A stretch of DNA of 64,000 nucleotides from Paragordius varius (GCA_964247055.1 OZ176050.1:11904001-11968000), one strand, 5' to 3'; shown: positions 51,801-57,800, counted from the stretch's first letter. Notes: generated by a model not told the origin, from the letters alone. Program-made: numbers and translations.

Positions 51801-54800
51801 AACTGAACTATTCAAGGGTGTATATATCTAAATCTAAAGTGATCATATCTTTTAGACTTCACGAGAACTCAAAATTAGTGGAGCAATTGGCCACATGATT
51901 GGTATAAAGAATGCGACGACAACCAAAAACAGTTATGTCAGTGATCAAAATGAGATTGGGGAGTCTGGCACGAATACGTGGAAAATTTGTTCCCTTCATC
52001 CAACATCAACGTTTGCCATCTTTTTTGACGTGGTAGCTAGTCAGGGTGGTTCACTTACACCTCAGGTAATTTGAAATAAATTTGCTTAAAAATTTACATT
52101 ACAAGTATGGTTTGCCAAAATATTTTATCTTATCTTCTTGGAGTTATATGGATTACTATGTTATATAGAATACTATGTTATATATATTATGTATATATAA
52201 CGAATTTTCCCTGGAATAGTTACACCTCGGGTTATTATTATATTAAGAATTTGCATTAAATATAAAGTATTATTAGAAAATCAGAATTTTTTGTACATTG
52301 AGTCTAGGACAACAACTAAAAATTTATTTACCTTGTTTCTTATCAAACAATTGATATTAATTTCATTAGTTGTATCAAACAAATATTTTAATATATTTTC
52401 CATATAATATATACAATTATAATTCCAAGTCTGGGAACCCTTTATCCGGCCTTAATGCATCAGCCATAAGTAATTTTGTTGGCACACTAACTGGAACAAA
52501 TACTGGCAGCAATGAACAATCATCAATGGGAAATATGGCACCAGGCATGATGTCTAGCAGCACCGATGGTTCTCAACACAAAGCCTACATTCAATTTATA
52601 ACAAAGTATTGATGTGTTTTTATAATATTTTAATTGCAATGAAAGGCTAAATAATACAATTTTTTTCTCAAAGTAAATTGGCTTTTTATTTTGTGAAAAA
52701 ACGATTTTTATAGGAAGGAGATTTACCACTAAATTTTTACTTTATAAATCGTATGCGTATGTGATGTTTTTTGAAGCCTCCCCCCCCCTCCCCCCAAAAA
52801 ATGCATAATTTATTTAGTATCACATTGAGTTGAATAGGGGCCTTTAAAAATTTTTTGGGTTAAAAATTATATCATTGGAGGAAAAAAAGAAACAAGAGAA
52901 TATTCACTATATTATTTGAACCGGTCAAATAGATTGACCCTTTATATATGCAATTATGTACGGTCATAACCAGTTATTAACACGTGTTAATAATAAATCA
53001 TTAAAGTAATCTAGTACTAATATTTAATATTAAAATTAATTTAAACCACCGATTTTTTTCTTATTTTGATAATTATTAGTAGATTATTTTTAAAATCAGA
53101 CATCATGGTTACGAATACACCCATGACAGGTCAGTCCCTACCCTATTTACTGTAATGAAATTACAGTATGAGTAAAGATACATCGGTAGTTTTTCAATAA
53201 TTATTGCTATAGAAACATATTAAGCAAAGGGCTATACTATTGGCTTTTATATTTGTTTCACTTTTTACCATTATTAGTCAATTACTTTTTGCTGTATATG
53301 ATCTCTGGCAATATTTAATAAAAAACTTGCAATGTTAACTTACTCATACAGTATTGCTGAAATGGTGTCTTAATAATCAACCAAGTTTTTTCCCAATACA
53401 TCTTTTAAAAAAACTATAATCTACATTTTATTTTTTAAAACTCAACTTTGTAGATACCGTACGGCTAATGGTATGAGTAAAGTGCGCGTTACAACAGTTA
53501 CTAGAAATTTTTTTGGCGTTGCACCACAAACCATATCCCCTCCTCAACAGAATCAATCATTAGCACAATTTGGATCATCACCTATGATGGGGGGAGTTGG
53601 TGTCCAAATGGGGCCAGGAATGCCCAATTCTACTGGAATGATGCCGATGCAAAATAACGCAGGAATGTTACCTCCTAACCAATCACAAGCACAATACAAC
53701 AATCCCATGGTGAGAATGATTTATTGCATTAATATATACCTGGTGTATTTAATTCTTACTAAAAGAATATGTCAGCGATGCGCAGACGATTAATTTGATA
53801 CAGACCTCATTTTGATCATTTAATATGAAACTTATTTGATTTCACCAAAAATTAGTGAGTTTTATCATTCGGTAATTATGTCATTTATGTTTGAAAAAAC
53901 ATTTGCGCGGCACGCTTTATAATCAGAAGAAAAAGACTACGTTATCGTTTGTTAGTAGAAACATATGGTGAATATGCTCTATCGATACAATAAAACATTT
54001 CGAATATTATAAGTTATGGTTTCATGTAAAAGAGCGTGGGTGCTCTGGTAGACCGCATAACCGCAAACATCAAATGCAAGAGATTTTGGATGATGACCCA
54101 ACTGAAATTCAACACCAATTAGCAGAAGCATTAGATGTATCACAAAATCATTAGATGTCCATATGGTAGAAACCAAATTCGGTAAATGGGTTTCACACAA
54201 TAAGAGTGTCAAATCGAAAATCGCATATGACTAGTGAAATCTTGCTTCAACGTCGAAGATACAGTTTCATCGAATTGGAACGGGTGATGAGAAAGGGCTC
54301 TATTTTATGAATCCAAAGCGGAAAATTCGTGCATCACCTTTTCAAGATGGCTCATTAACACCCAAATCACTTTGGCAAGAAATCCATTCTCTGTCTGGTG
54401 GAAAGCGGTGTGAACCTTTGAGGTCCCTAGATATTGTTTAAAACAATCAAATACCTGATTAAAGCCATGTATTAATTAAAAACAACCGGAATTAGTTATA
54501 AAACACGCCAAAAAGATTTTGCGACATGACAAAACTTCGCGTCACACAGCAAAATCAGTGATACCCACCTTAAAATTGCGCCGATAGGATATTATTCGCA
54601 CTCGCTGAAATATTCTAACCTGGCGCCATCTAACTAATTCAATTTTGCATCAATAGGGCACACCCTCGCAGAACAGCATTTAAGCATTTTCATAGATGTA
54701 AGTTTTCTGCGTTGGACATTTAATTTTTTTAGCACGGCATACATATATTGCCTCAGAAATGAGCAAAATATGTAGAAGGCGATGGACAATATTTTATAAA

Positions 54801-57800
54801 ATAATTGATTTCCATTCAAAATTACACTTTTTACTTAAAAAACCGGTAAAAATATATTCTTAGTATTTTTATTCCGATTTTAATAGGAGTGTACGTTAAA
54901 GATGAAATATTTATGATAAATATTTGTGCCTGTTAAATCACAATTATGTTTAATTAAGACTATTTTAATTTTTTTATTTTGAGCAAGGAGTAATTTATAT
55001 TGTATGTAATAGTACGGTATGAATCAAGGTCAAAATATGATGCAACAACAGCCATATGGTATGATGCCTAATCAACAGCCACAATCAATGCCTTATAACG
55101 ATCCAAGTTTTTTTCCTATAAAAATTTTGTAAATCAAATTATTGTCTGTTTTTAGCAGTTTTAATGAAAAATGTTTATTTTAATATATAAATTAAATTTA
55201 TAAAGGTATGAATATGATGGCGAATCCTGGGATGATGCAACAACAAATGCCAAATATGAATAACCCTAATATGGGAATGATGATGAATAATATGGGTATT
55301 TTATCATTTTTTTGCATTTTACACTTTGGGTGATAAAATATATTGAATTTTAAAATAACAAGTTAAATAAGATTTTATCGTTTTTTTAAACCATGCCTAC
55401 GATTTTATTATTACCGCAGCATATTACGAAACTGTTGCTTTTAATGACACGAACCCTTTTTTACTGACATTTTCTCTATCAAAGTTATTTTGTTTTAGCT
55501 TGTGAGCTAACAATCATATTCATATTATTTTGTGTGCATACTAGTTTTTTCTACCATCGCTTCATATAACATTTGGAAAAAACAGGCTTTTGTCAAATAT
55601 ATCATGTACCTAATAAACATCTTAAAAGTTTAGCTTAGCTATACCATTTTAATTCTAATACCCCTTTAATACTAATCGTATTGGAAAAAAACCTGAAATG
55701 TCTAAAATCAGCCACATATTGTGTTTTACTTGCATATTATTTGTATATATTAGTGTTTAATTTTTGAATAAATATAAAATATTTGTTACCCTTTCATACA
55801 TGGATCTCTATATATTTATGGGCTTTTATAATTTTTTAAGGTGGCCAACAACAGCCCCAACCTCAATACCAACAACAACCGCAACAATCATCAGTTGGTG
55901 GAGGTGGTCTTGACACCCTTTTCGGTTCGGCCAAATCCGGTTTTGACCAAGAAACAGCTGCTGTCCTTATTGCTAGGATGGCGGCTCATCGCGCAGCTCT
56001 AGCTGACACGACAGGCACACGGGCTGAGATTACAGAAACACTACGATGGATTGATCGAACTCTTATAAAATTGGTATAATTCTATTACACAAAACAGTTT
56101 TTTGTTTGAATCCAAAATTATTTGCATACTTTTAATTAAGGAAACTCTGTGTTTCCAAATGTTTAATAGCATTTGTGGGAGTTGTGCTACTAGAATGATT
56201 ATAACTTAAATTTTAGGGCCTTATTTAAAAATCAAAAAATTTCATGATGAGCTCTGTTTGTTGCATAACACTGGAATGGGGGAAGGAATTTACTGTATAT
56301 ATATATATATATATATATATATATTTTAAATGCGAAAGTTTCAAGCATATTTATACACACACAAAAAGGAAAGCAAAGGAATAAGCAAACCTTTTGACTG
56401 CTATATTTTTTTGGAATTAAGTGGGTAGTGATAGATATTAATTGAATTTTGCTTAAATTATGTACGAAGGACATTTTCATAGTACTTGATATGGAAAAGA
56501 TGTTAATGAATTTAAATACAAAAACATTTCTTTTTGTATATCAACAAAGAGATGGAATTTTTAATGATAAAAATATAAATTTTATGTAACAAAATGATAT
56601 ACGGACACCATCCTATCACAATAATTCAAAATATCTCAAATTTTATATGTATTAGTGTCAAAAATTTGGAGAATACCAAAAGGATATACCTGATACATTC
56701 AGATTGCCTGATAACTTTACCATGTTTCCCCAATTCATGTTCCATCTTAGACGTTCGCCTTTCCTGCAAATATTTAATAATAGTCCGGATGAAACTACTT
56801 ATAATAGGTTTTTGTTGCTTAATTTAAATTTTTTATAACGGCATATAATATCATTTATATACAAATACGAAACTTCTATAGTAAATGACTAATAATTTAT
56901 GAAGAAAATCATTTATGAACAATAACCCTAATAGCCTATTATTTTCATTTGCGTAATAAGGAATTGATAAAACACTTAATATTAATTTTAAATTTTAAAT
57001 CATATAAATATAAAGGATCAAAAATTATGGATATCTTTTTTCCTATAAAATTGCTAACGGTCGATATTCGATCACAAGCTCAACAACAACAATAAATATT
57101 ATTCTCTTTTTATGTTTTCCTTAAATACCCCAGATATGTTTTAATTGGTAGCACACTAAATTTTATTTAAAAATCGTACTAAAAAAGGTGTATCGTAAAT
57201 TTAAAAATGTAATTTTTTTATAAAAAATAACCTTTATAATTTTGACACTGTACTTTATTATCTATAATTTTAATTTTGACTACTGTATCATACCATAACC
57301 CAGATATGTGTTATTGCGTGAAGATTTAAATCAATCACTTATCATGATTCAACCAATCTTGTATTCTTATGGATTTTCGGGCCCTCCTGAACCGGCCTTG
57401 TTAGATAGTAGTTCGATTAAACCTGACCGAATATTGCTTATGGATACATTCTTTCATGTTCTCATTTATCACGGAGAGGTTTCATATTTTTTAATGGCGG
57501 AATAAGAAATTTTGATGAAAAATGTATAAAATCTGCATTAATTGAATATATTTATGCCTCGGTTTATTAAAATTTAATTAGCTCAAACATAAAGAGAAAC
57601 GAATTAAAAAAGTAATAATATTCATTTAAACATGTAGATCATGCTCATAATCATTTTTTATATGTCCTTTTTTCATTATTGGGTAATTATCGTTGTATAA
57701 ATGTATATATATATATATATATATATATATTATTTATTTTTTAAATTACTTTAAATGGATTTTATTTGATAGTACAATATTTTTTTGGTTTAAATTAAAT

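Follow-up and report, generated by a model that had tools for sequence, protein, structure and literature searches.

Sec23 is an ER-export coat protein of the COPII inner coat and is among the most length-conserved eukaryotic proteins. In a 64,000-nucleotide stretch of the Paragordius varius genome (the window), a first-pass annotation had nevertheless described a Sec23 gene with a Gln/Asn/Met/Pro/Gly-rich insertion of ~150 amino acids. The questions raised by this locus are whether the insertion is real and coding and, if so, whether it represents a device specific to COPII or a surface loop that the protein tolerates.

Identity and integrity of the gene

A single Sec23 gene, complete from start codon to last codon, was identified in the window (Table 1) and is located on a 15.2-Mb contig of this AT-rich genome. 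The locus matches the full 767 aa of Priapulus Sec23A colinearly (residues 1-767, tblastn), with ~61% identity to metazoan Sec23 over the full length, and by this colinearity across the whole of Sec23A the predicted product is an orthologue of Sec23 rather than of Sec24. Pfam scores on single exons exceeded the cut-offs for the trunk domain (PF04811, 67.9 bits versus 27, exon 50022-50312), the beta-sandwich domain (PF08033, 34.3 bits versus 33.5) and the helical domain (PF04815, 53.2 bits versus 27.8), and came close to it for the gelsolin-like domain (20.2 versus 21), a region that has 60-82% identity to residues 606-767 of Priapulus Sec23A. The zinc finger was unscored by Pfam on a single exon, that exon being split by a 26-nt intron, the removal of which brings back a Cys that is nearly invariant in the NP(Y/F)CQ(I/V)D motif. 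In the alignment to Priapulus Sec23A the four Cys of the zinc finger are kept, with both C-x-C pairs, and the arginine-finger motif GGSQ/ARF is intact (GGSQ followed by ARFLL). An open piece of 30 nt (53100-53129) was considered as a micro-exon and rejected, as the segment preceding VRVTT has exactly the canonical length without it. On the exon sums the predicted protein would comprise ~1,000 residues, versus a Sec23 median of 763.

Searches of the organism's own genome identified no second Sec23 copy; the Sec23 locus was the top match for the trunk domain, and two further trunk-domain loci, at 10.67 and 10.92 Mb, are separate genes. It is hardly credible that the locus is an artefact or a dead gene, whether as a pseudogene, through misassembly or from contaminating DNA: each of the 767 reference residues has its match, in the right order and without an internal stop or frameshift and with the key residues kept, the gene is the only copy and sits on a long contig, and the same exons are found in independent contigs of a closely related organism (organism B), where the changes are mostly synonymous. 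The gene looks fully functional and, as far as its sequence indicates, appears to be the organism's sole Sec23.

Size and composition of the insert

The distance from RVTT to FDQE is 166 residues in the predicted protein (160 from RNFF to FDQE), versus 15-30 (median 18) across 120 other Sec23 proteins; the 11 named animals, from five phyla, all have exactly 18. The excess over the canonical animal linker is ~148 residues. A Sec23 linker this long is set apart from all 120 Sec23 proteins compared. The insertion of ~150 residues claimed earlier is thus borne out, and none of the 11 named animals compared has a lengthened linker. The canonical linker is short, as had also been stated, but the value of ~13 given for it counts from RNW to FDQE, whereas the distance from RVTT is 18 in animals.

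Among 159 insert residues there are 31 Gln (19%), 27 Met (17%), 21 Gly (13%), 21 Pro (13%) and 19 Asn (12%), Gln and Asn together making up 31%, with only 3 charged and 8 aromatic residues. The enrichment in Met is pronounced (27/156 in the insert, 17%, versus 20/729 in the conserved blocks, 2.7%; Fisher p = 2.5e-10; plain binomial test, 3e-14). Six-frame scans covered the window and 200 kb from other parts of the same contig, and the only open segments of insert-like composition in them were the three in Sec23; a single other polar low-complexity open frame was present in this 264-kb sample. No tandem DNA repeat was found in the insert, which is therefore not a fresh product of slippage. In searches made with one exon at a time, Pfam and the ESM Atlas contained no look-alikes for the insert pieces, and a word search with exon A returned no candidates. 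A search of 1.8 billion proteins with exon D, at 78 aa a short query for so large a library, gave five borderline matches; only one was from Sec23, a fragment with a canonical linker.

Exon structure and coding status of the insert

The two flanking exons (A and D), which are extended, would encode the insert together with two small exons (B and C) inside what was probably one former intron.

Table 1. Coordinates of the Sec23 gene and of the features discussed, counted from the first letter of the window
Feature	Position	Strand	Length (nt)	Description	Basis
Sec23 coding span	45832..58973	+		start codon to last codon; ~17 exons	tblastn with Priapulus Sec23A; Pfam on exon translations
Micro-intron	46053..46078	+	26	AT-rich, phase 2, within zinc finger, 221 nt past start codon	
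L-loop exon	48670..48771	+	102	dedicated exon lengthening the Sec23 L-loop	loop comparison across Sec23 proteins
Hairpin-loop exon	52430..52605	+		lengthens a beta-sandwich hairpin loop	
Exon A	53454..53709	+		acceptor AG; donor GTGAGA at 53710; ends in phase 0	
Intron A-B	53710..55012	+	1303	degenerate transposase-like open frames at ~53970-54440	judged by eye
Exon B	55013..55106	+	94	phase 0 to 1; 31 Q/M/P/N/Y-rich codons	
Exon C	55206..55295	+	90	phase 1 to 1; 29 full codons, 12 Met	
Exon D	55841..56073	+		begins in phase 1; ~22 Q/P-rich codons (55841-~55908), then linker-helix remnant	

Exon A encodes the last beta-sandwich strand (53455-53514) and then 65 low-complexity residues (53515-53709). 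From 55909 exon D encodes what remains of the canonical linker helix, then FDQE (55942-55953) and the helical domain's first helix, and it aligns to residues 519-558 of yeast Sec23 and 511-553 of human SEC23A. Both low-complexity exons between them have the sequence reported in the first-pass annotation, whose description of the second as symmetric, and hence skippable without a change of frame, agrees with the phases; the two share a start motif and a ATGATGCAACAACA core. Splice sites of the insert exons are canonical (AG/GT) with mutually consistent phases, and a GTTTTT donor among them resembles the donor at 56808 between two conserved exons. A second donor of exon B, GTAAAT after 55127, is phase-compatible and would add 7 residues. 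Micro-introns inside the insert exons were also considered and rejected, the available GT..AG pairs of 20-35 nt being GC-rich, whereas the 26-nt intron in the zinc finger is AT-rich. Pfam found no match to the transposase-like frames of intron A-B.

Several features point to a coding insert. All four pieces are open, for which the chance given the local intron composition is ~3e-6, and their codon choice is like that of the conserved exons. The GC content of the insert exons is 0.36-0.52, versus 0.14-0.33 in introns; for instance, exon A has 0.46 and the intron that follows it 0.33, while exon C has 0.36 between introns of 0.14 and 0.25. Exonic differences from organism B fall at third codon positions in eight of nine cases (P ~0.001 under no constraint), seven of the nine are synonymous, and the sole indel, of 3 nt, is in frame. 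By exon, positions 53573-53709 of exon A are identical in the organism B contigs, exon B has a single difference (55054, synonymous), and exon D has one synonymous difference, one Thr-to-Ala replacement and the in-frame 3-nt insertion. This substitution pattern, together with 17% Met, suggests selection on the sequence and, against a nearly neutral loop, would also be compatible with a real function.

A shorter insert of roughly 90-120 residues would result if exon B, exon C or both were rare, alternative or non-coding and the main transcript spliced exon A to an acceptor further inside exon D, or used other sites. Exon C is a symmetric cassette, a second AG in exon D (55853-55854, 14 nt in) offers a phase-0 start matching the phase-0 end of exon A and would permit an in-frame A-to-D splice without B and C, and the organism B contig diverges into a repeat copy at 55103, 3 nt before the exon B donor, so that the end of exon B may not be conserved. 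Contigs of three small sequencing runs, presumed to be RNA, gave no match over 5.2 kb, conserved exons included, and so speak neither for nor against the splicing. We nevertheless regard the shorter insert as distinctly unlikely. Since exon A ends in phase 0 and exon D begins in phase 1 at its first acceptor, the 94-nt exon B is needed to restore the frame, and a direct splice from the exon A donor to that acceptor was rejected because it shifts the frame and runs into a stop; the first AG past the pyrimidine tract is the very acceptor that requires exon B. Moreover, exons B and C are open and AG/GT-flanked, their GC content (0.38 for B) is above that of the introns, and their peculiar Q/M/N/P/G composition is like that of the exon-internal parts of the insert and is otherwise unmatched in the 264 kb. 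Even so, exons A and D would hold more than 85 extra residues directly adjoining conserved sequence. On their splice signals and frames, exons B and C are predicted to be joined into the transcript.

A probable tolerated expansion of surface loops

The insert is not the only expanded loop of this Sec23. A beta-sandwich hairpin loop has 52 residues, versus 5 in 116 of 118 Sec23 proteins, and the exon that lengthens it differs from organism B at three positions, all of them third codon positions. The L-loop likewise has 52 residues, versus 13-31 in other Sec23 proteins. In yeast Sec23 the L-loop (201-217) is naturally disordered and variable, tolerates replacement and touches a neighbouring Sar1 in the lattice (PMC8016994). 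Both expansions are Ser/Thr/Asn/Gly-rich, a composition unlike that of the main insert. An AlphaFold model of canonical Sec23 places the main insert at a 5-residue coil (506-510), flanked by a strand (493-505) and a helix (511-517); of the other two expanded sites, one is a disordered loop (208-227) in this model and the other a hairpin turn, and the L-loop has a pLDDT below 50.

As three loops of the same Sec23 are expanded (+~148, +47 and +30 residues), the insert is probably a tolerated, lineage-wide expansion of a surface loop that is kept in frame by selection and is not a COPII-specific device; we assign this reading a probability of about 60%. An almost uncharged loop of ~148 residues, rich in Gln, Met, Gly, Pro and Asn, would have grown in the short coil between the last beta-sandwich strand and the small helix ahead of the helical domain. 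It would most likely be disordered and jut out of the folded core, with no disruption of the five domains, the zinc finger or the arginine finger. We infer both its disorder and a nearly neutral effect on function. The three sites may mark where the inner coat accepts large disordered additions, and such tolerant sites could be useful in tagging or engineering Sec23.

A possible methionine-rich prion-like domain

[quoted passage not shown] Its composition is typical of such domains in Gln plus Asn, in Gly and Pro, and in its few aromatic and charged residues. Methionine-rich prion-like domains of human proteins have been recognized by clustered Met, a contribution of Met to a low-complexity region (fLPS p < 1e-5), a prion-like probability from PLAAC of at least 0.9 and at least five Met (PMC9312190); the 27 Met of the insert are clustered, with the enrichment given above, and the binomial value for Met points in the direction of the fLPS criterion. 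The substitution pattern points to a reading frame under selection, and with a single-copy gene the loop would be present in every COPII coat. The earlier statement that the disordered Pro/Gln-rich regions of COPII normally belong to partners of Sec23 agrees with work in Drosophila, where low-complexity sequence was reported chiefly for Sec16 and for the N-termini of Sec24, and where entry into stress-induced Sec bodies both requires the low-complexity N-terminus of Sec24AB and can be brought about by it alone (PMC4270098).

Against this stand the two other expanded loops, which differ in composition and whose expansion is in keeping with a broader trend of mutation or tolerance, and the absence of known contact motifs: PPP is missing from all four insert pieces, in which PP occurs only twice, and no Trp is present among the 159 residues, hence no Trp-Asn (WN) motif. 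The known contacts of Sec31 and TANGO1 are therefore not copied by the insert. Pfam searches of the genome for Sec16 and Sec31 exons returned no candidates, an absence that is uninformative in raw, exon-split DNA. On balance a functional prion-like domain is unlikely. The stronger proposal, that Sec23 is a self-associating scaffold of ER exit sites through its own methionine-rich prion-like domain, perhaps sensitive to oxidation or stress and taking over in part from the low-complexity regions of Sec16, Sec24 or TFG, is very doubtful, and self-association or phase separation at these sites is purely conjectural. If the loop were active, a "sticky" low-complexity element of ER exit sites would have moved onto the GTPase-activating subunit.

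Comparison with known systems

Canonical Sec23 is represented by yeast Sec23p and human SEC23A/B (PDB 1M2O, 3EG9 and 6GNI). The P. varius protein is predicted to share the five-domain order of zinc finger, trunk, beta-sandwich, helical and gelsolin-like domains, and it differs in the lengths of the RVTT-FDQE linker, the hairpin loop and the L-loop. With the L-loop, likewise lengthened here by an exon of its own, the main insert has in common the expansion itself; however, it lies elsewhere, at the coil equivalent to Priapulus 506-510, yeast ~505-512 and human ~503-508, where the length is constant in the 11 named animals.

The low-complexity regions of the COPII partners, namely the Sec24 N-terminus, Sec16 and the proline-rich region of Sec31, resemble the insert in being polar, Gln/Pro-rich, presumably disordered and attached to the coat. 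The insert is, however, an internal loop of Sec23 and not a terminal tail, and contains 17% Met. Sec31 contacts Sec23 through PPP and Trp-Asn motifs (PMC8016994), neither of which occurs in the insert; in proline-rich regions of the TANGO1/cTAGE5 and Sec31 type the gelsolin domain of Sec23 is bound by a PPP motif. Methionine-rich prion-like domains of the yeast ataxin-2 and TDP-43 types differ in their host, which is an RNA-binding protein and not, as here, a vesicle-coat subunit; in clustered Met far in excess of five, in richness in Gln, Gly, Pro, Ser and Asn, and in low charge, the insert is like them.

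A single Sec23 gene with a long low-complexity insert

All 767 residues of the Priapulus Sec23A reference protein (P0094) were matched in colinear order on the plus strand in a tblastn search against 45.5-59.5 kb. The exon translations scored above the Pfam cut-offs for the Sec23 trunk, beta-sandwich and helical domains and slightly under it for the gelsolin repeat, and the best-scoring among 120 reference proteins were animal Sec23s, at about 61% identity. In the alignment to P0094 the zinc finger retains its four cysteines and the arginine-finger motif (GGSQ/ARF) is present; exon D, the last of four exons (A-D) carrying the main insert, aligned with residues 519-558 of yeast Sec23 and 511-553 of human SEC23A. 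Searches of the organism's own genome with the trunk family, a conserved helical exon and exon A returned two separate Sec24-like loci but no other Sec23 locus, and the gene is therefore the only Sec23 gene of the 110.6-Mb assembly. Within it, the zinc finger is interrupted by a 26-nt AT-rich intron of phase 2 (46053-46078, GTAAAA...TTTAG), which lies 221 nt downstream of the ATG.

Features of the Sec23 gene in window positions
Feature	Position	Strand	Remarks
Sec23 coding span	ATG 45832 to last codon 58973	+	multi-exon; tblastn with P0094
L-loop extension	48670-48771, plus 48047-48089	+	most extra residues on the dedicated 102-nt exon (48670-48771)
Hairpin-loop expansion	exon 52430-52605	+	Ser/Thr/Asn/Gly-rich with a Met-rich patch
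Exon A	53454-53709	+	phase-0 end; donor GTGAGA
Exon B	55013-55106	+	94 nt, phase 0 to 1
Exon C	55206-55295	+	90 nt, phase 1 to 1
Exon D	55841-56073	+	phase-1 start

The main insert lies between RVTT, in the last beta-sandwich strand, and FDQE of the helical domain, which are separated by 166 residues in the predicted P. varius protein (160 when measured from RNFF) versus 15-30, with a median of 18, in 120 Sec23 proteins of amoebae, fungi and animals, and exactly 18 in all 11 named animals (molluscs, priapulid, hemichordate and scorpion). This bears out the statement of the first-pass annotation that the stretch is short in canonical Sec23. In the predicted fold of canonical Sec23, which was computed for P0094 with a 60-sequence alignment (mean pLDDT 83, pTM 0.86), the insertion point corresponds to a five-residue coil (506-510) with a strand (493-505) on one side and, on the other, a short helix (511-517) followed by the first long helix (521-538). 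Since the canonical short helix persists immediately ahead of FDQE, reading ..[11 protein letters not shown] in P. varius and ..TSLPHIASS in Priapulus, the approximately 148 extra residues are placed directly after the last beta strand. Further downstream, the helical domain's first loop (55990-56025; ..[12 protein letters not shown]..) is seven residues longer than its counterparts in Sec23 of yeast, human and Priapulus.

Exon structure and coding signals

The exon coordinates and phases proposed in the first-pass annotation were reproduced exactly, and exon C could indeed be skipped, its removal leaving the frame unchanged. A direct join of exon A to the first acceptor of exon D throws translation out of frame and into a stop codon, and use of that acceptor therefore requires exon B; an inner AG at 55853-55854 of exon D would permit an in-frame A-to-D join, and a candidate second donor of exon B (GTAAAT after 55127) would add seven residues in the same phase. 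Alternative splicing giving a shorter insert is conceivable but improbable, and even with these alternative sites more than 85 extra residues still lie inside exons A and D. A 30-nt open piece at 53100-53129 resembles a micro-exon (AG/GT borders, phase 2-2) but is probably no exon, because its inclusion would lengthen a segment otherwise of exactly canonical length.

The 159 insert residues, counted piecewise, comprise 31 Gln, 27 Met, 21 Gly, 21 Pro, 19 Asn and 11 Ser, with eight aromatic and three charged residues. Met makes up 17% of the insert versus 2.7% of the gene's conserved blocks (Fisher p = 2.5e-10). Given the stop-codon frequency of local introns, all four pieces would be open by chance with a probability of ~3e-6. 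GC content is 0.36-0.52 in the exon pieces versus 0.14-0.33 in the intervening introns, and synonymous codon choice in the pieces is like that of conserved exons. In six-frame scans, open segments of insert-like composition numbered only three in the 64-kb window, all within the Sec23 gene, and were absent from 200 kb sampled along the contig. The combined 264 kb contained just one further open frame of polar, low-complexity type, which is Gln/Ser/Thr-rich, at least 40 codons long and lies in the sampled 200 kb (L027:1620-1748, ~9.0016 Mb of G000 C1). Tandem Repeats Finder detected no DNA repeat in the insert exons. Exons B and C share the motif at their start as well as a core of 14 nt, which hints that they may stem from an old exon duplication.

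Comparison with a closely related organism

A second organism that is closely related (organism B, run X3) is represented over the stretch by DNA contigs, and these show nine exonic substitutions, eight of them at third codon positions (P ~0.001 without coding constraint); seven of these are synonymous and one changes Met to Ile, while the ninth replaces Thr by Ala. When only the low-complexity parts are considered, the ratio is 4/5 (P ~0.05). The single exonic indel is a 3-nt insertion; in the intron between exons C and D there are 17 substitutions, along with deletions of 2 nt at two places. A pseudogene or artefact appears very improbable.

One organism B contig diverges at 55103, continuing with 21 other letters and then a copy of the window sequence from ~53295 onward. 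As it leaves the window 3 nt before the exon B donor, the end of exon B may differ in organism B, where a repeat copy may lie beside the donor. The repeat that it enters is also present in the window at ~53274-53370, and 53046-53393 (within 53033-53403) belongs to a repeat family, its depth in the organism B run being 4-5 times that of its surroundings. Separately, degenerate open frames at 53970-54440, in the 1.3-kb intron, resembled by eye the N-terminus of a mariner/Tc1-type transposase; Pfam gave no match to them.

Loop expansion in Sec23

Two further loops are expanded. The L-loop has 52 residues in P. varius, whereas its length ranges from 13 to 31 among 76 other Sec23 proteins. In crystals of Sec23 this loop is disordered, and within the coat lattice it touches the Sar1 that belongs to the adjacent subunit (PMC8016994); it is likewise disordered in the predicted fold of P0094. 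A hairpin loop of the beta-sandwich also has 52 residues, versus 5 in 116 of 118 Sec23 proteins, and all three differences from organism B in its exon are at third codon positions. Both expansions are composed of Ser, Thr, Asn, Gly and Ala with some Met-Gly-Asn-Met, unlike the main insert. The main insert may be part of a broader trend.

The best supported of the readings weighed, with a probability of roughly 0.6, is that the insert is a real, translated and disordered loop expansion in the sole Sec23 gene. The loop would be kept in frame by selection while the core functions of Sec23 stay unchanged, and it would represent one instance of surface-loop growth across the lineage. The first-pass annotation had suggested instead that the loop lets Sec23 self-associate or assume the scaffold role of a partner. 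Its composition agrees with this idea, and in Drosophila the low-complexity N-terminal part of Sec24AB is both necessary and sufficient for it to enter Sec bodies (PMC4270098); however, the loop is without known Sec31-type motifs, and both the PPP motif and Trp are absent from all four pieces, and such a role is considered unlikely, if slightly less so than a splicing-shortened insert.

Low-complexity inserts within conserved proteins are a known phenomenon. None of the 120 sampled Sec23 proteins has such an insert, and a literature search found no description of one in Sec23.
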